Below, piece by piece: positions 9,005 to 53,283 of a DNA stretch of 64,000 nucleotides. Position 1 is the first letter of the stretch. Each line of letters opens with the position of its first letter. The DNA comes from Takakia lepidozioides. Taxonomy: Eukaryota > Plantae > Bryophyta. The position numbers were made by a program, and so were the translations under genes. The notes under the pieces were generated by a model. The model searched no databases. It saw only the letters and a program-made list of their open reading frames with translations, and was not told where the DNA came from. The DNA lies in contig CM060732.1 in NCBI GenBank assembly GCA_030704615.1, forward strand, positions 41,726,001 through 41,790,000, given 5' to 3'.

Positions 9005-9015
9005 GTAGCGCTTAA

Positions 9016-20887: not shown

Positions 20888-20925
20888 TGTGAAGTTGAGA
20901 GACAACAAGGCTGTTTTCAGGCAAA

Positions 20926-24282: not shown

Positions 24283-24478
24283 ACTCGAGAACTTATTTTC
24301 GGGCTTTTCGGGCAGTCCAGGCAGGTTCTTAAGAAAAACGTCAGACGATGACGTGGCTGAATATGACGACGTGGCGAAGATGACGTGGCTAGATATGACG
24401 ACGTGGCTATGATGACGTGGCACTATGGCATTCTCTCTCTACGCTAAACTAGTCTCCGACCTTCGGTCGTCACTAGAA
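24283..24478 (-). mobile_element. Helentron/DINE-1-like terminus with GCCACGTC array, copy 1
   Basis: The minus strand starts TT-CTAGT-GA-CGACC-GAA-GGTCG-GAG-ACTAG, then ttagcgtagag, five GCCACGT repeats and ctgcccgaaaa. Homologous to 39040-39197 and 50044-50155. The repeat is directly seen, but the class assignment is inferred. Confidence 0.6.
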
Positions 24479-25218
24479 TAAAAATAAAACACCGTCCAAA
24501 TTGAATGTAGCAGCACATGACACATTGGATAATGTGAAGTTGAGAGACAACAAGGCTGTTTTCAGGCAAATTGTGCAGAGAAATAGTAAAGGGATGTACA
24601 TGCCAAACGTAGGCATCAAAGTAGACTGGTTTTATTTTGGGATCTGATTACAAAGTAGGGTTCTTCAACCTCAAATAGTCAAGAGCTAAACATCACTAAT
24701 CCCAAGGCATCTTACCATGTCCAGGTGAATGTCACACTCGGTTTATGCAAAGCCAGTGGGAGCCCAGTACACTTTGAGCTCCAATTTGAGTAACAGGCAA
24801 TGTTCAGATAGCCATAGCCACATCCTAGGTAGAAGAAGTATGACCCCCACAACCTGCTGGCCTCATTACAATCCAGACCAAGCCAGAAAGCAGACGAAGG
24901 TAGTCGACACATCACAATCCTTGACAGACCCCATGAAGGTCTGAAACAAGTAAGTTCACAGAACCCAACAAGTTTATTTCCGGTACAACATTTTCCTGAC
25001 AAGGGATGCCTCCCAGTCAAGCCATCATGCTAGCCTTCCACTGAATCACAAGGACAAACTATTGACTCCTACAAAGACAGGTCTGGGCACATAGGCCTTG
25101 ACGTCCACATTTCATCTGTTGCTAGATTAACAGCTACTGTGTTTGGGCAACTCAATACACTGACCTACAGTGTGAACCTTGCATCCCAAGATCATGTTGC
25201 TGAATCCAGCAGTGGCAG

Positions 25219-26668
25219 GGGGATCCTGCGACCGGTTTTCCTTCGCACATGGAACTCATCCATACCTTCGAGGCCTCTGGTCGGACGATGGTGGGCTTCA
25301 TTAGTCTCGCAGTTCCATGCTGGGGACTGCACCGAATACCGCAAGTAGCCCTCGAAGGCCTCATTCACACGGGCGTCTTTGTCGCTACCAGAGGCATCAC
25401 AGGACCCGTCACGGACTATTGCCGCAGTGCGCCGCTGAGGAACGATGCCGACCGTTGTGCTTTCTGGAATATCAACATTTATCGCCCGTGAGGGATGATG
25501 ATTGCTGACTGTGTGTGTGCCAGCAAAGTAACACAAAATGTTTGCTAGTTTCTTGCATACTAGTGTCAGGGCGAGTCTGTGGGTCATGCGGACGGACCAT
25601 CACGCACCTGCTCTCTAATAAACTCTGTGATTTGGTACTCCATTTGATTCAATGAAACGGATACATTTCCATTTGCAACCTCCTGTGTTATCTTTCAATG
25701 TTGTCAATAACGTTCGTGTATCATCTTCCTCATTTCTGGTAAAGTTCATGGAACCAACATTCCTAACTTTGCAGTTAGTCATTGCTTGAATTACTGCTGA
25801 TAAAGCTATCTTCCCTATCCATGGCTGTTGCAGCCTTTAATCAGGCGGCCATTCATGAACCCTTCTTTCTTTGTTCCTGAGTGCTCAGTATTTGCTTTTG
25901 GGCTGCTTGTGGAGGGTCCTCTCTCTGTCTTGTTTCGTGCTTTCACTGCTCCATACCTGATGACGACGGCGACAGTATCCAGGGCTTCCAGCAGGACGGA
26001 CATGGTTATACCTTGAGGGCATCACAACAAAAGCAGTAGCTAGAGGTGTGTCTGTTGTAACGAACCTGGCAGATCGGCAGATGAGTCGGCCAATTCTTCA
26101 TCTCTCTCAGGCCCGTACCAGCTGGAATGCTCTTAGCAGTGCTTCCTTGTCAGTGGGAAGTGAAACAATCCCCAGAGTACTCACACTAATTGCTTGCCCT
26201 CTTTTGTTATGCATACGAAATCAATAACCGACGTCCGGTATAACTCCGTCGGGCAAATTAGCCTGCCCATTGATCTGAAAAAAAATACGTTCCGTCCGCA
26301 CGGCCGATCAAAGAGATATCGTATGCCTGCTCGATAAAATGGTTCAGGATGTGGGTGGACATAATGAAAGATACTCTGTACAACTGGTCAAACTGTTGGC
26401 GAGTTATATTTTGTCGAGTTAAACGAGTTCTGCTTAAACTCCTCAAAGCTGCTGCTATGCACCTTCAATTCGGGAACTCTGCCGGGTTCCGCAGAATTCA
26501 GCCGATCCATGGTGAACTCCCTCTCCTCCCAGCTCCGTTCACTCCCATGTTTCTGTACGCTGGCCCCGCGGACGAGATGAGGCCCATCTGGGCCCTGTGC
26601 ACTTGGTGCTAGTGCTGAAGCAAAGCAGACACAAAGCAGGGCCAACAAAAGTTGTACGTTTGCCATAA
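25219..26668. pseudogene. Rearranged paralog of the 255-aa secreted protein
   Basis: The N-terminal half is on minus (26668 to ~26205, frameshifted, ending VIDFVCIT). The C-terminal half is on plus (25219-25491, DPATGFPSH...INIYRP). Upstream 26670-27745 matches 13730-14970. Confidence 0.85.
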
Positions 26669-28582
26669 TGAACTTCGATAGCGCTTCAATTGCTGCTGGA
26701 AGCTGCCGATATTCAATCGCCACTGAGTTTGTGATCACTTCCTGTACCTGTAGACATAGTCAAGGTGGTTGAGTGAGTATGGAGAGCATGCATGGAACGT
26801 ATGGGCGTGCTAAGTGATCCACCATCCATAGGTAGCGCTCATAATCTGTTATCCTCCTTCTTTCAGTCATTCCATTTGTGCTGCTGGATGGGCTGTGTAG
26901 CTAGTTCTACTTGTTGGAATTCAGCTAATAGGTTTGGACACTTCTATACAGAATCAAGGATTAGAGATCATATACTGTAACAAAACGCACAACTACACGA
27001 TGATTAAAAAATATCTAGCCGGAATGTGCAACAGTACAACACAAGAATGTATGCAATATTACATAAGGTAGAGCGAGCATATACACAAGCTGTCTACCAC
27101 TGTGCAGTAGGCGACTGGAAATCCAGGGAAGGAAGGAAATCCAGTGAAGGAAGAACTAGGGTCCAAATCCATGTTATCAAGGGACAGGAACGTAGAGAGC
27201 AAGGGGATGCCAACTCACCAACCAAGTCCACCTCCCTCTAACCACGCCCGTCAAGCAGAATACCACAATGACCTGCAGCACCCAAATCAGATGAAGACTT
27301 GCCAGTGAGCTGCTGGCTTTTATAGCAGCTGTCTCTTCCCTGTCTCTCTGCCCCCGAGACCACTATGGCAAGATTCTCGGCATTCCCGCTTCTCGGAAAA
27401 ATGGAAAAAATGGAGACTATGTAACCGTCCATCGAAAGGTCCCATTAATAGTATAGCTCACACGCACTGCTGATCGAGGCTGCTCTGCACATCTTGGGGG
27501 AGTGAATATCGTGAATATCCCAAGAATTTGGGGTGGAAGATTCTCGGACGTCCTCTATTATTTATGGAATTGTGTGTGACGAGTTGATGACTCGTAGCAT
27601 ATACTGGAATAACTCGTCAGGAGACGTGTTACCGTCAAGCGATGACTGATCTGTCACCTCGACAGGAGGGTGGCCTCCCTTATATTAACTTCTGAGAGCT
27701 GCTAGAGCGGACCCGGTCCCTCTCTTGTCCTTGGCAGCCTCTTTTTAATTGTGTTACTATCAGCTGATCATTCTTCCACTTACGATCGCGGGACTCGTTC
27801 AATTGGGCTGCTGCTTTACAACTAGATAGCTCTAGAACGCAATCGATACTGACTTAGTTTTCATTCTATTACTATGTTGTATGTATTGCTATATTGTTGA
27901 CAGTTGTATTGTTGTCGTTCTATTTACTCAGACGCCGCAGCTTACAGAAAGGAGGCCACATGTTGCAGTGCTTGCTCTGCAGGGGTGTCTAAATCATGTA
28001 GAGTTGAGCTGCTACATTGGAATCGAAATTCCCCTAGTAACTCGGGCAGATCCACTAGCAACTTCTGTAGATGTATGGTAAATAGATCTGCGCTAGATTG
28101 GAGAAAGTTATCGGTCGAACAAACAAAATGTTGTTCAACCGATGTTCCTTGATGTTGATTGCGCTTTGATGTGGATTGGGCTTTGAATCCGACTCTCAGT
28201 GTGCTTACGAAATTGGAGCTGGGCCGCAATGACATGTGCAGGGATCTCCCTTTTCGAGCACATTCACTAGCTTAATTTTGTGCCTATGGTGCCCTACGTT
28301 GTCTAGAACAATCTGCAAGAACATACAACACTCGTGCATGATCCTTTACAGCTCAATGACGATGATTGTCTTTCTCTGAGTGTGAATATGGCATGCGATC
28401 TAGCCTCTCAGACAGATGTGGATTGACCTGGACAGACTGCACCTAGGTCGCCAATTGTCGAGGGTACGTGTTCATGTTACAACCCAGGAGCTACAATGCT
28501 TCGGGACAGAACGAGATCGAAACATGCACTAGATACTCCAAAAGTGATACTCTCAATTGAAGAATCTCGTCAGTGATCTCAT

Positions 28583-31500
28583 TGTTGGAATTCGACAGAG
28601 AATAGAGATAAAAGATGAACTGATTACTGAGAACTCTCCACCCAACCATAGGACCACAACAAGCTGTGTCCACCCTCCGAGCTCTCCCTATTTATATTCA
28701 AAGTCTAATCCAGAAATAGCTGAGATAACTATAGCATAACTCCATGCTTTTACTTATGTTATCTCCACCTGCTATTATGGTACAATGACTTGAGTCACTA
28801 ATAATTGAGGCTAACTTTAGCTATCTTTTAGCTAACCGAGGCTTATCTCTATTGTTGACTGTGACTTGTCAGTATGTCTGGTTGTAGATATGTTTAATTA
28901 CTTCCAACACTCTCACTCAATTAAACCATATCATTGAGCTACTTCGTTTGTCTTTGGAGAAGAGACACCAAGTAAGGTTGAACATTTCATGTGTTTTGTT
29001 TGTGGTAGACTTTTCATCAAAACATCCGCAACCATATCTCCTGTATCACAATAGATCATCTTGATCTCTCCCTTGCATACAACTTCCCATATGTAGTGAT
29101 GTTGCACTTCAATGTGCTTCGTCCTTGAATGATATTTCGGATTCTGACTCAGTGCAATCGCACTTTGATTGTCACAATAGAGAGTTATAGGTAGTGATTA
29201 GAGATGATCCAAATCTCCAAGCAACTTCCGTAACCAAATAGCCTCCTTTGCTGCTTGTGTAATGGACATGTACTCAGCTTTTGTTGATGACAATGCTGTT
29301 ACAAAGTTGATTTTCTACTATCAACGTCTCATGCCCAGTCAGCATCAGCAAACCCAACAAACTTAGATCTTCCACTCTCTTATAGAGTAGACCAGAGGTT
29401 GATGTTCCTCTTAGATATCGAAATATCTTCTTCACTGCTTTCCAATGGGTTTGTCCGGGATTTGAAAGAAATTGTGAGACCACTCCCACTGAATGTGCAA
29501 TGTACAAACCATGCAATACACCAAACTGCCGACTGCGCTTTGATAAGGAGTTTTCCTCATATCTTCTTGCTCTTCTTGAGTCTTAGGTGTCATATCCTTC
29601 GTAAGTTTCAAACCAACTTCGAGAGGAGTTGATGTTGGCTTACTCATCTCCAACTTAAACCTTTGTAGAATTGTCTCAATGTATTGTCGTTGATGCATGA
29701 ATATTGTATGGTTCACTCAATCTCTGCTGATTTGAATACCAAGACAGAACCGAATCTCACCCATGTCAGTCATGACAAACTCAGCACTCAACAGTGCTTT
29801 GGTTTCTGGCAACAACCTTTTATGATCGTTGGTGACAATGATTGTGTCATCCACATATAGAGCTATGACCACAAATTGCTTTCCCATCTTTTTCACATAG
29901 ATGTTTGTGTCAGCAATGCTTCGCTCAAATCTTGCCTTTAAGAGGTAAGCATCGATCCTAGCATACCAAGCTCGAGGACTTTGTTTGAGTCCATACAAAC
30001 TCTTTTGCAGCTTACACACAATATCACTTCCTCCTTGTACAAACCCTTCAGGTTGTCTCATGTAGATCTCTTCTTGTAGTTCTCCATTCAGAAATGCGGT
30101 CTTAACATCCATTTGATGAACTTCGTGATCATGTTGAGCTGCAAGAGCTAACTCCTTTAATTTGTGCATAGCCTTTAGCTACAAGACGAGCTTTGTACCG
30201 GTAAATAGATCCATCAACTTTGTACTTCAACTTGAAGATCCATTTGCAACCAATGGCTCTTCGTCCTGTATACAACCTAGTGAGTGTCCATGTTTTGTTT
30301 TGCATCAATGAATCCAACTCTAAGTTGATTGCTATTTCCCATTGTAGGTTGTCTGGAGAGCGCATCGCTTCCTCATATGTAGCAGACTCAACCACTTGTG
30401 ATGCTTCTTGCATAGCTTCGATGGCACTCATAGATATAATCAGCCTACTAGGAGCTTTTCTTTCCCGCTGAGATCTCCTTAGAATTGGCACATCTTCAAC
30501 TTCATCTCTTGCTCCTCCAAGTGATGTGGTTTGCATTGGCCCGCACACATTAGAATGTACAATCTCCAATATACTTGTGGCTCTTTGTCCACCATCCTTA
30601 GGAAATTGACCTCGATGTTGCTTCCCTTCAAAGCAACCTTTGCATAGACGCATATCGCTCATCTCCTTCAATGATAGTCCTTCCACAAAATGGCTTGAGA
30701 GTTGTATCTGTCTCAACTTCTTAATGCTCACATGACCTAACCTTCTATGCCACAACTCTGTTTCTGACATGACAGGTGTAGATCCCAACTGTGGTGAAAA
30801 TGTGGTAAGAGCACTAGAGACATGATGTTGTAATCTATACAAGCAATTATCAAGAAAAGCTCTTGCTACCACAACTTCTGAGCTATCTGTGATAGTACAA
30901 CTCTCATCTTGGAATACCACTATGTATCCCTTTGCAACAATTTGCCTTACAGACAGCAGGTTCTTTGTTAAAGTAGGGACATGTAAGACATTTTCCATCT
31001 CTATGGTTTCCCCTTCATTGAGCATAAGATAAACTGAGCCTTCTTCACCAATGACATGCTTGCTATCATCTCCCAAAAGAACATATTGTGTAAGTGAAAG
31101 AGATCTATAGGATAAGAAATGCTCTCTCTGAACTCATATGTTGAGATGCTCCTGAATCAACATACCACACATGCTTCTGTCTAGTAGTGGCTGAGAGAGA
31201 CACAACAAATAGAATAACATTCCTCTGATGAGTAGCTATGTTTCCTTGACTCTCTCTGCTGCGTTCATCTGCAATGCAATCCTTGATCATGTGACCAAGT
31301 TTCTTGCAATAAAAACACCTCACTTTGGCCTTTTTGATCTTTGAGCTAGATTGAGGTTTCTGAAACCTCTGGGACTTCTGAGACATATGTGAAGGGAGTC
31401 TTCTATTCAAGACTACTCCAGTCTTGCCTATGAACAAAGCTTTGTCTACCTCTGTAGACGTACCTTGACATTTTCTTCTTGTTTCCTCCTTGAGGAGAAG

Positions 31501-32463
31501 TCTTATGACAACATCAATAGTTAAGTTGGTTTGTCCTGCTAGAGACACCACAAAACCATCATAGGATTCAGGTAAGGTTGCCAATAGCACCACTGCGGCG
31601 TGTTCATCAGTCACATTAGTTCCCACAGAGACTAGTTGATCTCGAACACACAAAACAAATTCAAGTATTGTTCAACTGAGTCTGACTCGGTCATCTTCAG
31701 ACCATAGAACTTTTGCGTCGCATACACTTGCGATGTGACATCCTTCGTCTCATATATGCTTGCTAGCTTGTCCCAAACATCTTTAGCATTCTTAGCACTT
31801 ATAATGAGATGCAACTGTTTGTCTCTCAAGCTTGTGATGATGCTAGCTCTTGCTTTCTGATCTTTCCTATCCCATATGGCTTGGCCAACAATAGTGTCAG
31901 GTCTTGGGACTAATCCATCAGTCACTCCCCATAGATCTTTGTCTAGAAGGACCATCTCCATCCTAAACTTCCAGGTTTGATAGTTAGCTCCATTGAATCG
32001 ATCTTCCACTCTCACATCTAATGCACTCGTCATAGACATAGAAGGAGGATTGCTAGAAGACGACGCTCCAGCCATAATCAAGTTCTCTCAATCTCAACTA
32101 CCAACCCTCACCTAGAAAAGAATTGCTCTGATACCATGTTGGAATTCGACAAAGAATAGAGATAAAAGATGAACTGATTACTGAGAACTCTCCACCCAAC
32201 CATAGGACCACAACAAGCTGTGTCCACCCTCCGAGCTCTCCCTATTTATATTCAAAGTCTAATCCAGAAATAGCTGAGATAACTATAGCATAACTCCATG
32301 CTTTTACTTAAGTTATCTCCACGTGCTATTCTGGTACAATGACTTGAGTCACTAATAACTGAGGCTAACTTTAGCTATCTTTTAGCTAACCGAGGCTTAT
32401 CTCTATTGTTAACTGTGACTTGTCAGTATGTCTGGTTGTAGATATGTTTAATTACTTCCAACA
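28583..32463 (-). mobile_element. Ty1/copia LTR retrotransposon, degraded, integrase core deleted
   Basis: 327-bp LTRs TGTTGG...CCAACA at 28583-28909 and 32137-32463, with about 6 mismatches by eye. PBS TGGTATCAGAGC (tRNA-iMet) at 32125-32136. Domains: gag, CCHC knuckle, protease WYVDSGASQHM, GAG-pre-integrase, RT (QMDVKTAFL, LYVDD) and RNase H. Frameshifts are present. Confidence 0.95.
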
Positions 32464-32629
32464 TATAACATGAGCCAGAGAGAAACAACCTCATTTTGCA
32501 TATATGTATGTGAAGTGTACAATTAACACATGGTCTTCCAGCTACATCGATCACTATCACATCAGCGGATACAGTAGCCACAAGCACAATAAAACCACAG
32601 GGAAACCAATGTGATACGTTCACATTGAG

Positions 32630-32897: not shown

Positions 32898-33456
32898 GGC
32901 AATGAGAGTCGGCACTGTAAAAGATCCTGGATTTTGGAATTGCTCGACTCCGTTAGCATGCACTCATGAACAAGTAAGCTTCGTTAGGTTTGTTTGTCCC
33001 TTTGCACACGATGCTATCTAAGCCTACTCTACATGTTATCGACTGGGAGTCGACAGACAGCGGCGGTCCAAATGCTGAGTCTAGCACCCATCTTATTAAT
33101 ATCGTAAGTACCTCTACTGGTCACTGCCAGGGCCCTGCAAGCTCCACAGTGGCGACGAGTTGTGGACGGAGGCAACTACGGAGACGGAGGCGCGAGGCTC
33201 GTGTTGTGTAGCGTCCAGAATTAGGGTTGGGGAAAACGTTTGGGACAGGTTCGGCAGCCCAAGAACGTTTGCTGGTCGTGTTTACGATGGCAGAGCTGCT
33301 GGTGACCTGATGTGGAGGATGAAGGCACTTCCTTGTTAGATTCCTCTCCGGTCTGATTGTTGTGAGGATAGTGTTTGTAGTTGATGAGTTCTGGCGGGGG
33401 TATCGAGTGTTGTGAAGGTGTTGTTTTTGGAGAGGGAGAGAGGGGAAGGAGGAAAA

Positions 33457-38044: not shown

Positions 38045-38887
38045 TTTTCATTGCGTTGTGCCTCACCTTCCCGGGGTACACATGCCTGTACTTTTTGAGA
38101 TCACAGGCTGCACTGCCCCTGAGCCCTCAGCATTTACTTTTTTTGTGAGGCAACCCTGTTAACTTAATTTGACAGACAAGTTATGTTCAGGATCAAGAGT
38201 CAAGTCTGTTGTGCCAACACGTCTCAGAACTTAGATTATGCAAGCGCCACCCATACCTTCATGGGGTCTCTTGTTGAGAGTAGAGGTCACATGTTTTCAG
38301 GATTATGAAGACCTGGTGAACTTTCAAAGAAACACACACCTCAGCATTTCTACACATTCTGGAAATTTCCTTGCCAGAATGTGGTAGGCTAACTACCTTG
38401 GGAGAGAAAGGTTTATATTTTTTGTTGACTTTGTCAATTTATCAAGATCCTTTAGGTCATAATTACCTTGCACTTGAGTGAGTTATATGAGGCGAATCTA
38501 GGTTTCAGTGTTGGCCAAGAAAGGAAGACAAGAGAATGACTTCTCCAGCTCAGGTTGAACTTGTTTTTCAACCATCTAGAAGTTTTGTGCTGAGACCAGA
38601 GTTTTATGGTACTCATTCTCAGGGTTTTCATATTTTAGGAGCTGTATCACCCAACTATTCCATTGGTTTGATGGCTTGCAGATCATTCTGCCCTGACAAT
38701 TCAAGGAAATCTCTTCTCAGGGTCGGGAGTTGCTGTGGAGAAAATTGCAACCGAAAAGTCTAATTATGATGATTTTATCCTTGTTTAGGGGAATGTGGAT
38801 TTGCCAAATTAATTTACCAAATCATAAAGTGTCTATATCCAAGCTCCTTTAGTGCATTACTCTGAAAGCATACAAGACAGAAAACTT

Positions 38888-39197: not shown

Positions 39198-39265
39198 GTC
39201 TTTGCAGCGCGAGGAAGGGACGACGATACGGTACCCGCCATCCTTGAGCGCGGAGGGGTTTCAAG

Positions 39266-40540
39266 CAATGTGGTGAGGGCACGTTCTTCTTCGACCTATT
39301 TCAGCCTGTTTTGCCTTCTCATCAGACTCAGGCCGTGTTTCAATCTCTGCCTGCTCAGCTGCACCGTGGTGGTTCTCACATACCAATCCGACATTACCTG
39401 ACTACAGAGACAAGCAGCACACACAAGAGGTCCTTGTGGGTTGATGGTCGGTCAAATCCTCCATGGGTCATGACACAAGGTCAAGGACAATGTGGTGAGG
39501 GCGCCTTCTTCTGCACACACAAGAGGTCCTTTTGGGTTGATGGTCGGTCAAATCCTGCATGGGTCACGACACAAGGTCAAGGACAATGTGGTGAGGGCAC
39601 CTTCTTCTTCGACCTATTTCAGCCTGTTTTTCCCTCTCATCATACTCGGCCCTGAGATGCATATGGAATTCTGTAAGTTAGCTCGTTGCAGGGTGGATCT
39701 GTGGTGGTTTGGAGTGACTTTGACAAGTTACTGCCGATGTGGCAGCGGGAAAGTATCCAAAAACAGATAACAGAGATGAGGAGAAGCTGGGACAATGGAG
39801 ACAAAAAGGTGAATGCCCGTTGGACTACAGAGTGAAGCAGATGCAATTCAGAATTGGAACTCTGTAATAAGTAGGGTTGGGGTGTTTGCTGACAACCGCA
39901 ATCGCAAGGTGTGGCTTTTCTTAATGTACGATGTGAAGAAGTTTGTCCATCCTGCAAATGTGGGCTCTTGGTTCCTGTTAGTACCATGATTTGGTATTCT
40001 TCCTGATGTTTACAAGGTTCTCGGGAGAGTCAGATTGGTCTTAGCAGGCCGTGTTTCAATCTCTGCCTGCTCAGCTGCACCGTGGTGGTTCTCACAGACC
40101 AATCCGACATTACCTGACTACAGACACAAGCAGCACACTCAAGAGGTCCTTTTGGGTTGATGGTCGGTCAAATTCTCCATGGGTCAGGACACAAGGTCAA
40201 GTACAATGTGGTGAGGGCACCTTCTTCTTCGACCTATTTCAGCCTGTTTTGCCCTCTCATTAGACTCGGCACTGAGATGCATATTGAATTCTGCAAGTTA
40301 GCTTTTTGGGTGGATCTGTGGTGGTTTGGAGTGACTTTGACAAGTTACTGCTGATGTTGCAGCAGGAAAGTATCCAAAACTGATAACATAGATGAGGAGA
40401 AGCTTTGGAATGAACACTTTCTGACGCCAGTCAATGGTGGGACAATGGAGACAAAAGGTGAATGCCTTTTGGACTACAGAGAGAAGCAGATGCAATTCAG
40501 AATTGGAACTACTGTAATTAGTAGGGTTGGGGTGTTTGCT
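39266..40540 (+). repeat. Local nested tandem duplications upstream of the PPR pseudogene
   Basis: 39329-39890 is repeated at ~40046-40540. The subunit caatgtggtgagggc...ttcttc occurs four times. Confidence 0.85.
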
Positions 40541-40758
40541 GGAAGAGCTTCACATCGTCGGTGTCAGCTGCTAGCAGCAAGGCTGAGGATGTATTCATGA
40601 TTTCTCCACAGGCAGGGATAGCTGAAGGACCATGGATAGAGGTCCAGATTCATCCAAGAGGGCCGGATATCAAGCTCCAGATTACCTATGATTCCCTGTG
40701 GATCAATAGCTACAAGAAACCTGCATGAGTAGATGGTCAACTAAAGGCAGCAACTGCA

Positions 40759-43700
40759 GTGACACAGTTGATAAAATCAGGCACCTCAACTATGACCATT
40801 GCTTCTGAAAGAAGATCAAGACAAGGAGTCCACAATGCCTCTTCTGGCACTTTTGGGCATGTGAAGATGCTTTGTGCGGCAGGCAGACTGACAGAGGCTC
40901 TACAGACTTTAAACCAAGGAGGCATTTCAGCAGATTCAGATGTGTATGTCTGTCTCTTGCTTAAGTGCATCAAGATGGAAGATCTGGAAGCTGGAAAGCA
41001 GGTGCACACTCACATTATCAAAAGTGGATTCACGACAAATGTTTTTCTACTCAACACCCTTGTCAACATGTATGTTAAGCGTGGGAGCATCATGGATGCT
41101 CACCAAGTGTTCAACAGAATGCCTCTACGATCTTTGATCACGTGGAATATAATGTTGGCAGGATTTACCAAGCATGGGTGTGGTAGGAATGCTTTGGAGA
41201 CCTATGAGCAAATGCTGCGCGAAGGGGTGAAGCCCAACCACGTCACATTTGTTTGTGTATGCAATGCGTGTGCAAGCCTGGGAGCTCTGGAAAAGGGGAA
41301 AGAGGTCCATGGTGACATTGTCAAAGCTGGAATTGTATCAGATGTCATTCTGAACACTGCCTGGTGGACATGTATGCCAAATGTGGGTGCATTAAGGATG
41401 TGAAGGGAGTTTTCAACACTATGGCTGAATGAGATGTGATGTCATGGAACGCGATGCTTGCAGGGACGGGTATGGAGGCTTTGGAGACCTATGATCAAAT
41501 GATGGGGGAAGGGGTGAAGCCCGACCACATCACATTTGTGTGCATTTGCAATGCGTGTGCAAGCCTGGCAGCTCTGGAAAGGGCAAAGAGGTCCATGGCG
41601 ACATTGTCAGAGCTGCAATTGTACCAAATGTCATTCTGAACAATACCCTTGTGGACATGTATGAAGGGAGTGTTCGACTGTATGGCTGAACGAGATGTGG
41701 TGTCGTGGAGTGCGATGATTGCAGGATATGCACAGTAAGGGGGCGGGATGGAGGCTTTGGAGACCTATGAGCAAATGATGTGCGAACGGGTGAAGCCCAA
41801 CCACATAATGTTTGTTTGCATTTGCAATGCGTGTGCAAGCCTGGCAGCCCTGGAAAAGTGCAAGGAGGTCCATGGTGACATTGTCAAATCTGGAATTGTA
41901 CCCGTTGTCATTCTGAACACTGCCCTGGTGGACATGTATGTCAAATGTGGGTGCATCGAGGATGCAAAGGGAGTCTTCGACAGTATGGCTGAACGAGATG
42001 TGGTGTCGTGGAGTGCGATGATTGCAGGATATGCACAGCAAGGGTGCAGGATGGAGGCTTTGGAGACCTTGAGCAAATGATGTGCGAAGGGGCGAAGATG
42101 GTCAACTGGAGGCAGCAGTTGCAGCGGCACAGTTGATAGAATCAGTTTGTGTTTGCAATGCGTGTGCAAGCCTGGGAGCCCTGGGAAAGGGGAAAGAGGT
42201 CCATGGTGACATCATCAAAGCTGGAATTGTACCAGATGTCATTCTGAACACTGCCTGGTGGACATGTAGGCCAAATGTGGGTGCATTAAGGATGCAAAGG
42301 CAGTTTTCAACAATATGGCCGAACGAGATGTGGTGTCGTGGAGCGCGATGCTTGCAGGGTATGCACTGCAGGGACGTGGGGCATAGAACTTCCCTGAACT
42401 TGTTTCCAGATGCAGAGAGAAAAGGTAGATTGTCAATACCTGATGTGTGGGCACCCAATTGTTTATATCAAGGTAGGCTCAGCCTCGAGATTTTGGAAGT
42501 TGTTGAACAGAGGTGATGAGCAGAAAACAGATATTGTCTTCAGGCAGCACTGGCACGTCCTGCCATCAGTGGGGACCTGAGAACTTTCATTGTGAGAAAG
42601 GATTGGAACACTGGCTGGAAGCAAACACTGCAGGCATCTTCACTGGCTGAGGAGAGAAGTGGGAGTGGCGAGGAACAATCATAGCACACAGGCATGTCGA
42701 CATGTGTTCCGGTATCCTCCCCACCTCCGGCTTTCCCTCGCACTGTCAATGCAGCCACCTTCAGTTTGTCAACCCAGCTATCTGGCGCCTGTAGGCCCTG
42801 CAAGCGCCCGTAGGTATGCTGTGCTACTTTACAACAGCCTGCATGCAACAGAATGTCATTCTGTCACTTTCTCAGCCGATCAGTCACTTGATTGGTGTTT
42901 AAACTTTTGCTAGCCAACCCAGTGCTGTAAGTAACAGAGACGAGGAGAAGCTGTGGAGTGAATACTTTTCTGACCCCAGTGCTCGTGGTGTGCTTGTGCA
43001 TGCCTGGCAGCCCTGGAAAATGGCAAAGAGGTCCATGGTGACATCATCAAAGCCGGAATTGTACCAGATGTCATTTTGGACACTGCCCTGGTGGACATGT
43101 ATGCCAAATGTCAGCATTGAGGATGCAAAGGGAGTTTCTGACAATATGGCTGAACGAGGTATGGTGTCGTGGAGGGCGATGATCGCAGGATATGCCCATC
43201 ATGGTTGTCATAGGGAGATCCTGCAACTATTGGAAAGAATGCAAAAGGAAGGCTTCAATCCAGACAGTAGTGCCTTTCTATGTGTTCTCTCTGCATGCAG
43301 CCATGCTGGCCTACTGGATGAAGGAAGATGCTACTTCAATTCCTGAGTCCAGATCATGGTGTGACTCCGACGGTAAAGCACTTTGGCTGCATGGTGGACC
43401 TTCTTGGACGTGCGGGCAATTGGATGAAGCAGAGGACCTCATTAATAAAATGCCAATGGAACCAGATGCTGTGGTGTGGATGGCCTTGCTTGGTGCCTGC
43501 AGAAGCCATGGCAATCGCAAAGGTGAGTGAGATGATGAAGGTCAGAGGGGTTAAAAAGGAGCCAGGTCGCTGCTGCATTGAGGTTGGGAACAGGGTGCAC
43601 ACCTTTGTTGTAGGTGACAAATTGCATCCCAAAATTAAGGAAATCCATGCTAAGCTGAGAAGATTGTCTGGGCAGATGAATTAGGAGGCAGGGTATGTGC

Positions 43701-43962
43701 CTGACACACGCTTTGTATCACATGGAGCAAAAGGAAGCTTCTCTTTGCTACCACAGTGAGAAGCTGGCCATTGGTTTTGGGCTGATAAGCATAGCCCCTA
43801 GGACGCCTCTGCGTCTCATCAAGAATCTGCGGGTGTGTGGTGACTGCCACACCTCCACCAAGTTCATCTCAAAGATTGTTGGCCAAGCAATTGTTGTATG
43901 GGATGCTAACCGCTTTCACCACTTTAAAGAATGGGGTTTGTTCTTGTGGGGATTACTGGTGA
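40759..43962 (+). pseudogene. PLS-E-DYW PPR pseudogene (PG-box, C-to-U type)
   Basis: Repeated P-L-S triplets, KKEPGRCCIEV, HSEKLA, RVCGDCH, ending GAT TAC TGG TGA (43951-43962). Many frameshifts and a non-PPR insert at ~42383-43000. Confidence 0.92.
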
Positions 43963-44344
43963 AACGTTGTCTTGTTTGTTGGAATGGTTCGGATGCCTTG
44001 CTTCATTCTTTGATCTGTGTAGCTACTCAGTTCGTCCACCATTTCCTGAGAATGTTGGCCATGATGTACTGTTGAGGGCATTTCCGTACCATAGATCCAC
44101 AGGAAACAGTAGCGGGGTCTACAGGTAGTTAGTGAAGGGGGGGATTTTGACTGTCTCTGGTGAAAGTGGAAAGAAATCAGAGTGCTGTCATATTTCTGGT
44201 GTGGGTGGTGGATCTTCTCCAAAGCTTGAAGATGAAAGTTGATTAGAGGGGCGGCCTTGTGCACAAGTTTGTTCAGCATCTTTTATTTGGACAAGTTTGT
44301 ATATTTCTCGTGGTGCTGCTTCAGATTGAGCAGATTAGTATCAC

Positions 44345-44570
44345 CTTTGTATCTCTTCTGTGTGCATGTAGCTTTGGGGGTCTTGAAGGCCATCACTACT
44401 TTGATTCCATGACTGAAGCTCGTGGCCTCACGCCTACAGTTGAGCATTTTGGCTGCATGGTAGACCTTTTTAGCTGTGTAGGGCGATTGGATGAGGCAGA
44501 GGACCTCATAACTAAAATGCCCATCCAACCAGATGTTGGGGTGTGGAGGTGCCTGCAGAGTTCATGGCTA
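44345..44570 (+). pseudogene. Isolated PPR fragment (L2-S2-E region)
   Basis: FVSLLCACS...YFDSM...[12 protein letters not shown]...[18 protein letters not shown]. Confidence 0.8.
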
Positions 44571-45174
44571 TGTATCATCGCGTGTGATGGACACTTTTGG
44601 GTATGTTAAATGCTACTTACAGTATCTGATTGCCAGCGTATCGTCTGACTCATTGGCAACTCTCAAGGTTAGTGGTGGCATTCTCATAGTAGATAGTAAT
44701 TGTATAGAGCCGCAATGCAGCCACCAGTGGAGAGGTTACTCTAGCTGGGCTGTAACAAACCCTGCTGACCTACTTAGGTGCATATCAAGCACATGCTTGT
44801 GATATGGTAATGAGCAACTAGCATATCATGCCTGCTTCAACTAAGGGAACCAAATGACTCTCTCCATGTGCGACTCCAACAACATTATATAGATCTTGCA
44901 ACACTGCTCTAACATGCTGTTTTGTCGTTCTTGATACTTCAATTTGTGACTTCACTTGAGAGGCTCAAAGTGTGAGAATAGGTTTCTCTCATATTCTATA
45001 CAAACTGATAAAAAGGTCAACCAATTGAGAGGCTAATCAACAGTGTGTTGGCAAGCTTCACAAGCTTTGACTTGTATTTCGTTCTCGACTTGACCCCGGC
45101 TTCCTTCAAGTGCTCAATCATTTTTAACAAGCTTTTTTGATTTATGGCAAATAGAATAATAGAAATTAATATAT

Positions 45175-48100
45175 CTTCTTCTTTTTTTCTTTTTTTCTTT
45201 TTTTCTTTTTTCCTTCGCGGAACAGGGGTGTGTGGCCCTGTTTTACTTTATTGAAAAAGGGAAAGATACAAGCATAGCATCATGAGGAAAAAATAACCTC
45301 AATATCAAAGTGCCATAGAGGTTGATGTAAGAAGCCACTGCTTCGTAACCAAAAGGCAACAGTCTGCAGAGAAAGAGTCTGATAAGGTCTGGTAATGAGA
45401 GAAGAGAAGATAAAGCTTAGACTCAAGAGTCAAGTCCATCTAAGAAAGGGTGTCAAAGGACCGTTGCACAATCGATTTGCCCTTCCTAACTGATTTTCTA
45501 TGCCTCCAATTGACCTCATGGTCCTCCCGATCCAGCGGGGTATGCATCGCACTAAGCGAACTGCCAACCTGATAGGATGGTGTCGCTCCAGAGAACTCAG
45601 GAATCAGATTGCCTGGTGCAGATTTTGCCCCCTTTGCCCCAGGAGTTGTCAAACTCATCGAGAAGTTGAGTCCTTCTTCTCAGGCCACATCTGCATAGAG
45701 CTTCCCCAATAACCTGCCAAGCCTTCCTAGCATCAGACATTAAATCTGATTGAACCATAAACAATATAACCCTAGCGTTGCTCCATTTGTTAGCAAAAAC
45801 AAAACCACATTTGGCTTTCCAGATATTCCATAGCGTCTGAGCTCTGAGGGAAGCCCATACCGGGCAAGGTGACCACAATGCATCCTCTTGAAAATTAAGA
45901 AGTAACACTGAGGTATCATCCCGAGGGAGAGGGTTCCAGAAGGAGTAGAAATTCCGGACCATACGCCAGAAAGCACGGGCAGCGTGACAGTATAGTAGGC
46001 AATGCTCCATGGTTTCAGGCACGTTCATGTTGCAAAGCTTACAAACTGAGCTAGCATCAGAAACAGAGTAAGAGACTGGGAGAATTCTGTTAACCATCTT
46101 CCATAGAAAGCCCGACAGCTTTGCAGCCTGGTCTTTCCTCCAAATATCATTCCAAATGCACTTCCAAGATTTGGGATGGCCAGAGAAATGAGCCCATTTC
46201 TTGGTAAGCTTGAGATCCACTGGGATATGGAAGTTTAGTAAAGAGTACCCTTTCTTGACCATGTAAGAGAAGAAAGGCGAGTGCTTCTTATCTTGCCAAA
46301 TCCATTCACCAGGGTCGAACTGTAGCAAGGTTAGCGGAGCCAACAAAAACCAGAGGAAGTGAGAGCTTTGGTGGCAGCCATTGGCCGCTGAAGGGGCTGA
46401 TCTTGCCAGTGTTCATACAAATGACTCTGATGGCATAGAGGGCAACTTCCTCGCAATGAGAAATTTCAGGAGAGTGTAAAAAACCAGAAGGGTGGACTTT
46501 AAACAACCAGCCCCGAAGGGAAGAGCTATCCCGGGACATAGCAAAGAAAGCTTTTTTGGGAATGATACCCTCCAAACCCCACCATGTGTTGAGGGCCTTC
46601 CTGTTCCTGGGATGGGAGGTCAGAGAAACCCAGCGGTCAGGGAAATCAGCAGTCACCATCCCCCAACCAGCAGCAGCCCGCCTACTGGTCATATCAGAGG
46701 TGACAAGCTCTCTAGGCAAAAGAGTACCATCGCTCCAAAGCTGAGTAAAGTAAGAAACCCCCGCGGCTTCCCAAAATGCCCAGCGAGGTGAACACTTAAT
46801 GAGAGCTTCAGAATCTCTATTGTAATTTCCAAAGAGGGGTTGTCTGAGGGCCTCCTCAGACGTCGTGGGCTGAAGCTGAGCAAGAGAGATACGCATAGCA
46901 GTCCAAGCCCTCCATATGGATCTCCACGCACTGGAACCAGATAGAGGTTTGGCATTCGAGTTTCCACCTTGCACCACCCAACGTGCCGAGGGTGACCAAA
47001 TAGAATGAGGGTTAGGCTTTGCATTTAAGAGATGTTGCCTGACTAGAATACTCCATGGGGCAGAAAAATGCGTGAAAATCCGGGGTATCCACTTGGCAAG
47101 TAGAGCACAGATCTGATAACCAGGGTCAATAACTCCAAGGCCCCCATTTTTTTTCTTTTGTGTTATTTGCTTCCAACTCACCAAAGTTCTTCTATTTTGT
47201 GAAGGGCTGGAGGCTCCCCAAATGAAATTGCGAACTAGGCTCTTAATCTGTTTGATTACAGCTTCGCCCGGTGACCAGACTGAGGAAGAAAACCAGCAAG
47301 AAGCCAAGAGGACGTGGTTGGCTACCAGAGCCCTACCAGCGATGGAGAGATGCATCGAGCTCCAGTGAGACACGCTTCATTTGAGGTTGGAAATGAACCT
47401 TTTTGATCTCTTAATATCATCCAGATCATGACCTATGAGGTGACCCAAAAGCACATGAGCACTCTCGTCTTGAAGCCATGAGAGACCGTTGCTTTCCCCC
47501 CAATCATGGCAGTGGGCAGCAGAGCCAGGCTGCGTAATCCTTGAAATGATACCTTTGGACTTGGGTCAATTAACTTTAAGTCCCGACGCCTCACAAAAAC
47601 AGTCGAGGGCTGAAAGCATTCTGTCCACATTAGACTGAGAGCTATTATCAAGCAAAAGGACCGTATCATCAGCATACGTGGAGGATTTAATGTTGTCCTT
47701 GGGGTCAAGGGACTGGGGGTTTTTGAGGCCCCTAATATTCATGCCTGAATCGCAGCAGGTGATTGAGCCCATCCGCAGCCAGAAGAAAAAGAAAATGAGA
47801 GAGGGGGCACCCTTGTCTGATAGATCGGAACAGGGGGAAGAAGCTCGATAGAGCTCCATTGATGATGACTTTGCTAGAAGCAGACTGAAGAAGGATGCGG
47901 ATCCAAGTGAGGAAGTTTCCATGGATTCCAATTTTTTTGATGACTGCGAGGAGGTAAGTCCAGTCAATGTTGTCAAAGGCTTTTTCAAAATCCAGCATCA
48001 GTAGAGCTAGCGGCTGACTGGTCTCATAGGCAGCGTCCAAAGCTTCGTTAACCAACAACACATTATCTAGGATCATCCTATCCTTGAGAAAGCCAGTTTG

Positions 48101-48500
48101 CTCAGGGAAAATTAATTTACCTAGCAGGGGCTGCAGTCTGAAAGCTAGGGCCTTTGCTACAATCTTATAAACTGCATTAAGAAGAGTGATAGGCCTGTAA
48201 TTTGAGATGGAACTCCTTTCTCCTTTCTTGAAAATAAGAGTTATAACTCCCTGAGCAAGCTGAGAGGGCATGACTCCTTTTTTAAGAATATCATGTGTAA
48301 GAGCAACGAAATCATCACAACATTCCAACCAGATTGATTTGAAAAGCTCCATTGGGAGACCATCAAGTCCTGGGGATTTGAAAGAAGTCAGGGAAGACAT
48401 AGCCTCCTCGAGTTCCTTTGCAGAGAAAGGCTCCGTGAGAGCAGTCAGGTCTTCCTAAGAGACAAGGTTTGGAATAGTAGCTAGGATCTCGGATAAGGAT
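45175..48500 (-). mobile_element. 5'-truncated L1/Tx1-type LINE (ORF2 RT + zf-RVT), frameshifted
   Basis: KSPGLDG, NYRPITLLN, LDFEKAFD, RQGCPLS, YADD and a C-terminal CxxC...ETMEHC. The 3' end has AATAAA, a small hairpin and an (A6-7G)n tail at ~45175-45211. Confidence 0.92.
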
Positions 48501-50043
48501 GATGTACACAGATGTATCTATATTATATCTTTAAATTAATAATCTAAACTGCTTTTAATGGGCGATGAAAAATAGATTAGTATAATTACATGTATCACAA
48601 CCAATGGCTATACGCTAATGGCTCCTCTTTGCAAAGAGTGAAATCTACTTTCATCCATAATAAACCTGAAAATTTCTACACATTGAACACCAAGAATTGT
48701 GGTTGGCCAGTCGTGGAGGCAAATGACAATGTCAGTGCCATGCCATCGCAAGGCCTCACTTGGATGGGCTAAGAATTTTTGATATAACTCTTTAGTGTAT
48801 TTAGCATAAAACATTATGTGGAGTAAAATAAAATAAGTGGATTATATTGGTATAATATGAAAGTACATAAGGTAAAAACACCTAAAATGGATCATTTAAA
48901 GACATGTGTGCAGTTTCAGGTGTGCAGTGTCGTCCTATATATTTTTCTGATGTGGGCACATAGAAATAAAATTTAAATGCAAATAAATAAATAAATAATC
49001 CGAATTATTTTGTAATATTGGTGAATATTCAATGTGAAATCATGTAATAACCTTGAATGGACCAGTAGGGGGTACTATTTTGAACAGCAAGTACACTTTG
49101 TCTGAAGCCAAAGGTGCCCAAAAAGTGTGCATCCTCTTTCACTTTACTGATTAAACAACATAGTAACATGGACCATGTCAGTCAACTAACATAACTATTT
49201 ATTGACCTTAAAGTAACCTCCCACCGTCCATTTGGATTAAACTCAATCCTGATCGTTGATCTAGGTGAAACTCAATTGGAATCGTTGATCACGGCATGTG
49301 ATCCCCTCTCCTACATGTTAGGATTCATTCTTCCTGTCTTGACTTGATAATGCTCTCAAAGTGCTCCCCTGTGGTTATTAACTTGTCCATTAAGTGGTGT
49401 CATCATGATCATATATCAGTTAAAAGGGTTCATTGGAGTTCCATTTGGCCTACCACATGACCTAATTTGGACCACTTGTGATCAAAGCACCTTTTAAAGA
49501 GGGCATATGGTTAGTTTTATGTATTTTTCTAGGGGTGCGTTTTGGGTACCGCTCCATTTTAGGTGTTTCTACCTTATCCCTTCACTGCTTATCAGGGTAT
49601 CCCACTACTTTTTGCATAAGATTTATGGTTCAACCATGAATGAGCCTGGTGGCAGACTTGCTCCAAAAAACTCCATGAGATTTCTGGAAAACTTCATTTG
49701 GGGTATAGCATCCTTGAGTGGGCCCTGCCTATCATCAAACAAGGGAAGCAAGTACGCACTAGACTTCAAGCCACCGACTTCAAGAGACAGCTGATACATC
49801 TGGTAGTTTCTTGCAAAAAACAATGAAATCCAGGATCTATGTATGTAACACCACCCCTTTTTTGTGCAAATTGAACGTAGTGCAATGCAAGACTGTCTGA
49901 AGGGTCTATCGGCTTTTGTTGTCTTCGTGTTCTTTCAGTTGCATTGCACAACATTGTAGTGTATTGCATTTCATGTGGATGCAGCACATGGGATGTTTAT
50001 TTGTGTTGTATTCTATCGATTGCACTAGGGTTTAGGAATGTAG

Positions 50044-50155
50044 TTCTAGCGATGACTGAAGGGAAGCTAGTTTAGTGTAGAGCAGGAATAGGGTGCCATA
50101 ATGTCACATCATCGTAGCCACGTCATCGTCGTCAGCCATGTCATCGTCGTCATTT
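50044..50155 (+). mobile_element. Helentron-like terminus copy 3 (decayed)
   Basis: ttctagcgatgactgaagggaagctagtttagtgtagag followed by gccacgtcatcgtc repeats. CpG-type decay relative to 39040. Confidence 0.55.
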
Positions 50156-51454
50156 TTTGTGTGTCGATTGTAACGGAGCCTCGCAGAGTCGGCAGCGATC
50201 AATCATCTCTTGCTGGTTTGTCAGGACAATGCATCCGTAGAAGAGGCTGGGAGCGTGGACCCTGCGGCAATTGATGTATTAGTGGACCTCACTGATGACC
50301 CTGTAAGACTTTATTTACAACATGTACCTCACTGATAAATGTCTTCATATAGATGCCAGATTGTCTAATACATTGCTAAAGTCTCCACCTCCCTCATGTC
50401 TCAGGTTTGGAGTTATGACACCCCTACTTGTAAACAACTGAAAAGATGAGCCGACTGTTAGGGATGACCACCTTTGCAGTTTGCAGTATGTGAACCGAAT
50501 CAGGGTTCTTGCTTTTGTTCCATAATCAGCTCATCACAAGGGCTGCCCTGCCATCTGCAATCAACTTTCTTCTCCACAGCGGCTGGCAGAGACACCCTGG
50601 TTCTCAAAAATTTCCGCAAACCCACAGCTTTCATTTTTTGCTGGCACGGTGACCTGCTCAGACACTTTCACTCCCAGGAGGCTTCCCCCAAGTTAATACC
50701 ACCAATGGTCGGCTGCTTTTGTAAGCCATGGATAACCCAATTCCAGCTATTCCAACGACATTGTCAATTGGCACCCTTTGAGATATAAATTGCTCCCTAG
50801 GTTGCTGTATTGATTTATGAGATTTGGAGGCAGCTCACTCTCTCTGATTTGTGGTGGTTATCTGATTTGTGAATGCAGGGCATGCGCCTGATGGGAATTT
50901 CACCAGCCATAAGTAATCCCAGCCACCGACTAAAGAAAACCCGGAGGGGCCTCCAGGTGGGCAAGCAATTCTAGTTTATCTGCACCAAAAGGGTGCTGGA
51001 ATGAATGTGGGGATAGATTTTCAAGTTGGTGAACAGAGGTGCAGGACAATGTTCTTCATGTTCCTGAAGAGGGAAAGAGAGAAAGTGAGAGAATCTACTC
51101 ATAGAAGTATGTTTTTTGTAGCCTTCTGGCCATAGACCCCAGCGCCCCACCTCACACAAGCATGGACTTGTTGTGTGTGAGCTGTCCATCTCTCTTAGAC
51201 CCATACGCGGAATGCCAGGCGAAAGTACACTGTATATAGCAGTGGTATGGGCCATTGCTGCATGATCTACCTGCCAATGTTTTGAGGGTACGTGTAGGGC
51301 TATTATCATTAGATATTAGTGGGCATCTGACATTTTACAGCTTCAGGTTTTGGTGCACACGATGTTTTTGGAGCATATAGGGTTTATGCAGGTGCCTTTT
51401 CTAAAGCATTGGGAAAGCAGACATGTTGAATTTTCTGGTAATCAGGTGCATTTT

Positions 51455-53283
51455 ATGAAGGGAGTGTTCGACAGTATGGCTGAACAAGATGTGGTGTCGT
51501 GGAGTGCGATGATTGCAGGATATGCACAGCAAGGGCGCGGGATGGAGGCTTTGGAGACCTATGAGCAAATGATGTGCGAAGGGGTGAAAACCAACCACAT
51601 CACATATGTTTGTGTTTGAAATGCGTGTGCAAGCCTGGGAGCTCTGGAGGTCCATGGTGACATCGTCAAAGCTGGAATTGTACCAGATGTCATCCTGAAC
51701 ACTGCCCTGGTGGAGATGTATGCCAAATGTAGGTGCATTAAGGATACGAAGGGAGTTAATTTCAACACTATGGCTGAACGAGATGTGGTGTCGTGGAACG
51801 CGATGCTTGCAGGGGTATGCACAGCAGGGGCGTGGGATGGAGGCTTTGGAGATCTATGAGCAAATGATGGGGGAAGGGGTGAAGCCCGACCACATCATGT
51901 TTGTGTGCGTTTGCAGTGCGTGTGCAAGCCTGGCAGCCCTGGAAAAGGGCAAAGAGGTGCATGGTTGCATCGCCAAAGCTGGGATTGTACCAAATGTGAT
52001 TCTGAACAAAACCCTCGTGGACATATGCCAAATGTTGGAGCATTGAGGATGCGGAGGGAGTGTTCAACAATATGGCTGAACGAGATTTGGTGTCATGGTA
52101 CACCATGCTTGCAGGATATGCACAGCAGGGGCGCGGGGTGGAGGCCTTGGAGATGTATGAGCAAATGATGGAGGAAGGGGTGAAGTGCAACCACATCACG
52201 TTTGTGTGTGTTTGCAATGCTTGTGCAAGCCTGGCAGCCCTGGAAAAGGGCAAAGAGGTGCATGGTGACATCATCAAAGCTGGAATTGTACCAAATTTTG
52301 GACAGCCCTGGTGGACATGTATGCGAAATGTGGGTGCATTGAGGATGCAAAGGGAGTATTTGACAATGTGGCTGAATCAAATGTGGTGTCATGGAATGCG
52401 GTGATCGTAGGATATGCCCAGCATGGTTGTTATAGGGAGGTCCTGCAACTATTTGAAGGAATGCAAAAGAACGGCTTGAAGCCGGACAGTATCACCTTTA
52501 TATGTGTTCTCTCTACATGCAGCCACACTGGCCTACTGAATGAAGGAAGACGCTACTTCGATTCCCTGAGTCAAGATCATGGTGTCACCCCGCCAGTAAA
52601 GCACTTTGGCCGCATGGTGGACCTTCTTGGACGTGGGGACAACTGGATGAGGCAGTGGACCTGATTAACAAAATGCCAATCAATCCAGATGTTGTGGTGT
52701 GGAAGGCCTTGCTTGGTGCCTGCAGAATCCATGGCAATGTGGAGATGGCTGAACGTGTGGCAACATCTATCCTCAAGTGGGATGAACAGGATGCCGCGAC
52801 TTATGTGTTGCTATATCAAACATCTATGCTGCAGCTGACAGGTGGGACGATACTGCAAAGGTGAGAAGAATGATGAAGGTCAGAGGGGTTAGAAAGGAGC
52901 CAGGTCGCTGCTGCATTGAGGTTGGCAACATGGTGCACACCTTCGTTGTAGATGACAAGTTGCATCCCATAATTAAGGAAATCCATGCTGAGCTGAGAAG
53001 ATTGTCTGGGCAGATGAAGGAGGCAGGATATGTGCCTGACACGTGCTTTGTATTGCATGATGTGGAGGAAAGGAATGTCTCTCTTTGCCACCACAGTAAG
53101 AAGTTGGCCATTGGTTTTGGGCTGATCAGCACGACTCATCAAGAATCTTCGAGTGTGTGGAAACTGCCACACCTCCACCAAATTCATCTCAAAGATTGTT
53201 GGCCGAGCAATTGCTGTATGGGACGCTAACTGCTTTCCACCACTTTGAAGATGGGATTTGTTCTTTGTGGTGATTACTGGTGA
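51455..53283 (+). pseudogene. PLS-E-DYW PPR pseudogene, close paralog of 40759-43962
   Basis: Same motifs, but HSKKLA (catalytic Glu lost). Ends GAT TAC TGG TGA (53272-53283). The 3' flank 53284-53690 matches 43963-44330. Confidence 0.92.

Follow-up and report, generated by a model that had tools for sequence, protein, structure and literature searches.

A hairpin-headed module upstream of three PPR-DYW pseudogenes in Takakia lepidozioides, a candidate 5' end of a Helitron2-type element

A 64,000-nucleotide stretch of the genome of the bryophyte Takakia lepidozioides (NCBI GenBank assembly GCA_030704615.1, contig CM060732.1, forward-strand positions 41,726,001 to 41,790,000; hereafter the window, to which all coordinates refer and within which sequences were searched unless another source is named) holds three pentatricopeptide repeat (PPR) pseudogenes of the PLS-DYW class, each of which has the same non-coding module of 160 to 185 bases upstream of it. 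We read this module as the 5'-terminal part of a non-autonomous Helitron2/HLE2-type rolling-circle element that carries a PPR-DYW pseudogene as cargo, an interpretation on which our confidence is evenly divided. It is preferred over a promoter reading because homology breaks off at the foot of a hairpin beside a run of T, because one pair of that hairpin shows a compensatory change, because a diverged sibling head stands in a junction of Helitron2 form, and because a tail-then-head layout occurs twice.

The module and its terminal hairpin

The initial annotation of this DNA placed the module before all three pseudogenes in the same relative orientation, at distances of 0.4, 1.7, and 1.4 kb (copies 1, 2, and 3), and both direct reading and a profile search bear this out, the module being always upstream of the PPR and co-oriented with it. 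The copies are built as follows.

Module copy 1, 24295 to 24478, minus strand: TT (24478-24477), hairpin (24476-24449), a 16-mer, tandem units (24347-24421), and a short conserved tail.
Module copy 2, 39040 to 39197, plus strand: TT (39040-39041), hairpin (39042-39069), tandem units (39102-39173), and a tail that runs to an ATG.
Module copy 3, 50044 to 50160, plus strand: TT (50044-50045), a decayed hairpin, and tandem units (50107-50153); the 3' part is gone, and the similarity fades at about 50160.

An nhmmer profile built from the three copies recovers only these three as full copies in the 64 kb (E values of 1e-55, 3e-48, and 7e-40). The hairpin is a 28-nt palindrome with two stems, the outer one made of CTAG and one more pair and the inner one of 5 bp, GC rich and closed by a 3-nt loop. 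Behind it stands a 16-mer that, by alignment, is identical in copies 1 and 2 and differs at one base in copy 3, followed in all three copies by tandem units of 14 to 18 bp with an ACGT core (units of 14, 18, and 32 bp across the three copies, and in copy 1 by itself). Copies 1 and 2 have a short tail after the tandem units, ending in ...CCCGAAAAT.

When folded as single-stranded DNA, copies 1 and 2 adopt an identical two-stem hairpin (-6.3 and -7.7 kcal/mol, z of about -2.8), whose 17-nt core occurs twice in the window against an expectation of 0.03. At the fifth outer pair, copy 1 has T-A where copy 2 has C-G, a single compensatory event that the annotation had pointed out and that alignment and folding both confirm. 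The succession of TT, bulged hairpin, and tandem array, also described there, holds for TT and the tandem units in all three copies and for the hairpin in copies 1 and 2; in copy 3, the inner stem has been lost through a 3-base deletion and C-to-T changes (CpG to TpG).

TT precedes CTAG in four of four heads (the fourth is described below), and at copy 1, it adjoins a 14-nt T-rich tract. The homology between copies 1 and 2 begins exactly at this TT-CTAG boundary, the foot of the hairpin, and ends at the ATG in copy 2; the DNA upstream of copy 1 is unrelated and T rich. Alignment of the copies revealed no direct repeat of a few bases in the flanks of the module, and neither the target-site duplications nor the terminal inverted repeats of another transposon superfamily, a possibility raised in the annotation, were found when looked for at the module. 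Scans with Rfam and for tRNAs returned no family and no tRNA-like or short interspersed nuclear element-like head in the module. A word search with the open reading frame (ORF) that runs through the module gave no relatives, and one with a 214-amino-acid PPR ORF gave relatives at 32 to 34% only; exact look-ups of four ORFs of the window matched no record.

Every PPR copy is preceded by a module, and one module head, at 54.8 kb, has no PPR downstream of it (tblastn). The features of this region are as follows.

Fourth, diverged head, 54805 to 54848, plus strand, within a junction at 54761 to 54850: CTAG head at 54807-54820 and 16-mer at 54833-54848.
46-bp stretch, 54502 to 54547, plus strand: 87% identical to 49808-49853 (E value of 1e-9).

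The fourth head reads AATT-CTAG and then CTAG again, the latter continued by 12 conserved bases out of the following 12 to 14, at the right spacing before a 14-of-16 match to the conserved 16-mer, and the filling of its hairpin differs. It shares 8 plus 14 of 16 flanking bases, a spaced pattern that, by our own arithmetic, is expected in the window at about 1e-7 by chance. Upstream of it lie, in order, a 12-mer (54768-54779) with complementarity to the opening 14 nt of the head, a 22-nt hairpin (54779-54800), and TAAATT. The published description of Helitron2 gives the 5' end an inverted repeat (ATIR) 0 to 2 bp from the end, a hairpin, a T at the junction, insertion after T-runs, and compensatory changes, and gives the 3' end an asymmetric inverted repeat with a hairpin immediately behind it, 20 to 30 bp from the 3' end (Bao & Jurka 2013, PMC3627910). 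By our analysis, the 54.8-kb junction fits the head-to-tail grammar of these elements, i.e., subterminal repeat, hairpin, T-run, and next head. The 46-bp stretch lies 190 to 310 bp upstream of a TT-CTAG head both times, once before the fourth head and once before that of copy 3. Past the fourth head, there is a second long hairpin (54882-54939; arms of 16 nt at 88% and 8 nt at 100%), and no coding content was seen near the junction (around 54761-54940).

The pseudogenes and the ends of their units

The three cargo genes differ in what they have kept.

PPR-DYW pseudogene 1, 22637 to 24155, minus strand: without the N-terminal part present in pseudogene 2; DYW domain cut at about 22640.
PPR-DYW pseudogene 2, 40759 to 44562, plus strand: N-terminus kept, PLS triplets amplified internally, and an extra E-fragment at 44337-44573.
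PPR-DYW pseudogene 3, 51458 to 53389, plus strand: DNA homology with pseudogene 2 extends to 53694.

Pfam recognizes PPR, E+, and DYW pieces at all three loci, each of which has stops or frameshifts, and PPR/DYW coding similarity within the window is confined to them (tblastn). In pseudogenes 2 and 3, a PLS triplet of about 290 to 300 bp has been amplified to up to 9 register-matched copies (41050-42440 and 51410-52440), such that these PPR arrays are reshuffled internally and not merely decayed.

The identities of the modules run parallel to those of the non-repetitive E/DYW part of the genes (for copies 1 and 2, 1 and 3, and 2 and 3, respectively, 81.8, 76.8, and 87.6% in the module and 76.6, 75.2, and 89.0% in E/DYW), which points to one history, ((2,3),1). 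The initial annotation had remarked that copies 2 and 3 share flanking DNA, as they do for 150 bp upstream of the module, and had counted two independent cases; since module and PPR co-diverge, we would recognize only one lineage. Judged by these sequence comparisons, the association between module and PPR is real, yet it represents a single lineage and not two or three independent events.

Upstream of the PPR, copies 1 and 2 have only the module in common (24478-24295 against 39040-39197), and what follows the ATG of copy 2 is not conserved between copies. Copies 2 and 3 are homologous over 38886-39155 and 49885-50160 (150 bp upstream and about 120 bp of the module), have no homology for the 1.3 to 1.9 kb past the module, and then share the PPR body up to 44331 and 53694. 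No 3' end is common to the three units, copy 1 stopping within DYW and copies 2 and 3 at 44331 and 53694, where there is no hairpin; the downstream ends of homology bear no poly-A tail. Neither the spacers between module and PPR nor the downstream stretches match Pfam, and the spacers were rejected as captured genes or upstream PDF exons, having no match in Pfam or Atlas. In unit 2, the spacer contains a tandem duplication of about 716 bp (39329-40750, with blocks at 96% and 85%), whose ORFs have no Pfam or Atlas match, as well as a 96-bp tandem repeat (39417-39608, 95%). That of unit 3 starts with an exon-like, acidic-rich open frame that ends at a GTAAG donor (50160-50310); it has no family match and may have been captured from another gene.

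Two further pairs of sequences define how the units abut.

150-bp block, first copy, 38886 to 39038, plus strand: adjoins the copy 2 head; contains a hairpin with a 6-bp stem, a site II motif (39008-39012), and a telo-box (39027-39034).
150-bp block, second copy, 49885 to 50043, plus strand: end of unit 2, directly before the copy 3 head; 94% identical.
Segment A1, 24479 to 24570, minus strand: about 92 nt with a weak hairpin and a T-rich tract; adjoins the copy 1 head.
Segment A2, 20836 to 20925, minus strand: 92% identical to A1; 3.55 kb downstream of the copy 1 head.

Twice, therefore, the DNA that adjoins a head also closes its unit downstream, in one case as A1 and A2 and in the other as the 150-bp block. 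On the PPR strand, A2 comes after the PPR and a further 1.7 kb of unassigned DNA, and the interval between A1 and A2 is bounded by CTAG at either end (24476 and 20926), each flanked on the outside by T. A2 bears the weak-hairpin sequence of A1 about 18 nt from the T-tract, a tract that may belong to the tail of an adjacent long interspersed nuclear element (LINE). This tail-then-head pattern is what rolling-circle head-to-tail chains are expected to leave; tandem duplications yield the same. Directly before A2, a degenerate tandem array of 85- to 100-bp units occupies 20944-21400 (minus strand). There are two occurrences of a 25-nt motif with CCCTAG at its end, separated by about 395 bp, and the second of them falls exactly on the boundary of A2.

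Searches of the window for other terminal structures gave the following picture. Only at the 54.8-kb junction, that of the sibling head, was there a subterminal 3' repeat complementing the 5' arm, together with a hairpin. A second subterminal inverted repeat of the DINE-1/HINE type was found on neither strand, and there is no inverted copy of the 16-mer in the window, for which reason an HLE2-reverse layout (stem-loop, left repeat, and far right repeat) was rejected. Mismatch and gapped searches for a terminal partner, like inverted-repeat searches within each unit, gave pairs at chance level only; a perfect 13-nt pair in unit 3 (49967-49979 and 53412-53424) was set aside, as it lies inside the copy 2/copy 3 homology and not at its edge and matches at 10 of 13 positions in unit 2. 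Canonical Helitron 3' ends (a stem of at least 6 bp, CTRR, and T) number 0 on both strands of the window versus 0.85 in shuffled sequence. The module itself was likewise rejected as such an end on the other strand, as its CTAG is followed by A and not T and the stem has only 5 bp.

Weighing the explanations

If the module is the 5' end of a rolling-circle element, a RepHel encoded elsewhere would nick at the T-run beside the 5' hairpin, and one strand would be peeled off and copied into T-rich targets. Missed termination would produce head-to-tail chains and partial units, and a gene piece would move as DNA, with its introns and flanks. The copies seen here would be old (12 to 25% apart) and rearranged, their 3' ends lost or swapped. 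The internal duplications that scrambled the PPR arrays count for this reading. Of the transposon terminus proposed in the annotation, the 5' layout and the sibling junction fit Helitron2/HLE2, whereas a second subterminal repeat, a 3' stem-loop of the units' own, and a RepHel were not found in the window.

A number of observations weigh against it. The annotation had found no 3' terminus, and window searches demonstrate no 3' end for any of the three PPR-linked units. No complement of the 5' arm of their heads exists elsewhere in the window with up to 3 mismatches or gaps, and segment A and the 150-bp block are mutually unrelated, neither of them pairing with the head. Window ORFs of at least 150 amino acids contain no Helitron_like_N (Rep), RepHel, or PIF1 domain; there is no empty site; and nothing was found when metagenome contigs were scanned twice for exact matches to the hairpin pattern, no copy of the head being recovered outside the window. 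The three copies have unrelated spacers between module and PPR, and the homology of copies 2 and 3 extends 150 bp beyond the supposed terminus. All three copies lie within 30 kb of one another in a region rich in other local duplications and inversions, for which ordinary duplication suffices. The module also has a promoter-like CpG content (observed/expected of 1.4 to 1.7, in the top 1% of the window), and copy 2 carries a site II motif (TGGGC) and a telo-box (AAACCCTA) 10 to 35 bp upstream of the hairpin.

The alternatives are, in order of how well they survive, as follows.

(i) Because the 3' partner is missing, the copies are clustered locally, and promoter-like features are present, plain local duplication, in which a PPR-DYW gene was copied along with its promoter and 5' leader, stays alive as a serious alternative, though one that we regard as less probable. 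The module would then be a CpG-rich core promoter or leader with bZIP-type ACGT sites, and its hairpin would be incidental or regulatory; two events of unequal exchange or break repair, one inverted (copy 1) and one tandem (copies 2 and 3), would have made the copies, and insertions and deletions would have replaced the spacers. Such a course accords with the crowding of three copies into 30 kb, alongside at least five local duplications and inversions that are unrelated (80 to 98% identity), with the co-divergence of module and gene, with the flank that copies 2 and 3 share past the module, and with the stop of the copy 1/copy 2 homology at the ATG of copy 2, although there is no conservation after the ATG between copies. 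It leaves unexplained why the copy 1 homology stops at the foot of the hairpin against a T-run, why a diverged head without a PPR stands in a Helitron2-like junction at 54.8 kb, and why segment A brackets unit 1.

The promoter-like features themselves cut both ways. When the window is taken in 200-bp intervals, the modules form its 2nd, 3rd, and 7th highest CpG peaks (1.57, 1.37, and 1.22 against a median of 0.45), and comparable peaks that stand right before the STT3 ORF (33151-33350) and the PIN gene (60501-60700) favor a promoter. CpG retention as proof of one is weakened by losses in copies 1 and 3, as in silenced DNA: copy 1 has apparently lost about 40% of its sites, and copy 3 keeps 6 of the 13 alignable CpGs of copy 2. 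In reverse complement, TGACGTGGC, which we take to be a bZIP "hex" site, is present in the tandem repeat unit. Site II motifs and telo-boxes pair up in land-plant promoters (PMC3212954), as TGGGC and the telo-box do upstream of copy 2; copy 3 retains only the telo-box, and copy 1 is without that region. Against this, the telo-box count in the window (5 versus 2 expected) is not significant, and TGGGC is merely a 5-mer. We consider the promoter evidence soft.

(ii) It is quite improbable that the module is a piece of a different repeat (of another transposon superfamily, a miniature inverted-repeat element, or a satellite-like sequence) that was copied passively with an ancestral PPR gene and had no role in its amplification. 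Structure on the 5' side only and the want of a terminal partner, a target-site duplication, and a coding partner would agree with this, and co-divergence is compatible with hitch-hiking. The terminal inverted repeats or target-site duplications of another superfamily are, however, likewise absent, no Rfam family or tRNA-like head was recognized, and the 54.8-kb junction specifically fits rolling-circle grammar.

(iii) The weakest alternative is a strict DINE-1/HINE element, i.e., a non-autonomous partner of the endonuclease-bearing Helentrons with paired subterminal palindromes, central repeats, and a 3' stem-loop. HINEs are described as having subterminal inverted repeats of 12 to 15 bp, located 2 to 4 nt from the 5' end and 38 to 60 bp from the 3' end, a short palindrome 8 to 35 bp from a T-rich 3' end, and internal microsatellites or tandem repeats (Thomas et al. 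2014, PMC4067079). We give this alternative hardly any credence: the palindrome 2 nt from the TT boundary, the T-rich flank at copy 1, and the tandem repeats match that description, and the weak hairpin of segment A lies 18 nt from a T-rich end, but the second subterminal repeat expected 38 to 60 bp from the 3' end is absent, and the window has no endonuclease-RepHel, its sole Exo_endo_phos ORF (3848-4972) lying at least 20 kb from the modules with no adjoining Rep or helicase. With the defining second repeat and the endonuclease-RepHel not found in the window, the DINE-1/Helentron label of the initial annotation is too narrow.

Surroundings, related systems, and significance

The remaining coding content of the window consists of a LINE, two copia-type elements, STT3, a C2/phosphatase-like gene, and a membrane-transport (PIN-like) gene. 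The LINE (45175-48470, minus strand; ORFs with RVT_1 and zf-RVT) ends 3' in a short hairpin and a tail of the (GAAAAAA)n type. The same combination of hairpin and A-rich tail closes a 1.4- to 2-kb repeat at 10087-12163 and 19466-20840, with a partial copy at 5765-6774, and these repeats are probably 3' parts of LINEs. A copia-type long terminal repeat (LTR) retrotransposon with gag, integrase-side, and RVT_2 pieces lies at 28583-32463 (minus strand); its direct repeats of 327 bp (28583-28909 and 32137-32463) are 98% identical, and it is a fairly recent insertion. Between 5765 and 27744, local duplications and inversions that do not involve the PPR genes (80 to 96% identity) form a mosaic, in which 8230-10023 pairs with 16167-17151, 10021-11436 with 19466-20886 in inverted orientation, and 12742-14969 with 25220-27744, partly inverted.

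The annotation had called elements of this kind little described in land plants, a view that is outdated: in 2024, HELIANO reported HLE2 from 13 of the 74 species that it sampled, Sphagnum among them (PMC11417382), and Helitron-5_SMo of Selaginella was listed as Helitron2 as early as 2013 (PMC3627910). With Helitron2/HLE2, the units described here share the T at the 5' junction, an arm that forms a terminal hairpin, the compensatory change, the T-rich target at copy 1, the sibling junction, the head-to-tail layout, and the presence of gene fragments inside. They differ in that the three PPR-linked units lack a 3' inverted-repeat partner and a 3' hairpin, in that their tails are mutually unrelated, and in that no RepHel occurs in the window; the 14- to 18-bp tandem repeats with an ACGT core behind the hairpin do not figure in the published definition. 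The likeness to DINE-1/HINE elements lies in the TT or T-rich site, the palindrome 2 to 4 nt from the 5' end, and the internal tandem repeats, whereas the paired 3' subterminal repeat and the endonuclease-bearing partner were not found in the window, and DINE-1/HINE elements are known mainly from animals. Canonical plant Helitrons resemble the units in being DNA transposons that bear pieces of host genes and multiply them as pseudogenes, but their ends (a 5' TC, a GC-rich 3' hairpin with CTRR, and an A/T target) are absent here.

The expansion of PPR genes in early land plants has been ascribed to retroposition, the signals of which are weak in Takakia by the authors' own remark (PMC13386178). 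That model addresses the same question, the multiplication of PPR-DYW genes in heavily editing lineages, but invokes RNA copies, recognizable by intron loss, poly-A, and flanking LTRs; here, a non-coding upstream module is common to the copies, and there is no poly-A at the ends of homology. The copies in this window appear to have spread as DNA. A search of the literature found no paper linking Helitrons to PPR-DYW genes.

Should the rolling-circle reading hold, the module would define a family that is new, though of a known kind, and whose cargo is of interest. What the window contributes is a 5' end with a compensatory change in its hairpin, a sibling junction of full Helitron2 grammar, and a tail-then-head layout; because all of the cargo is dead and the 3' ends are missing, it is a supporting example and not proof. 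It is a further and, in our estimation, unlikely step that a Helitron2-type family repeatedly took up PPR-DYW genes and multiplied them as DNA in head-to-tail chains, adding working genes as well as pseudogenes to the very large editing-factor family of the lineage; nothing in the window shows a working editing factor made by this route. PPR-DYW editing factors number many hundreds of genes in hornworts, lycophytes, and some mosses, and if that reading is true, a route through DNA transposons would be a second path of PPR expansion beside retroposition.

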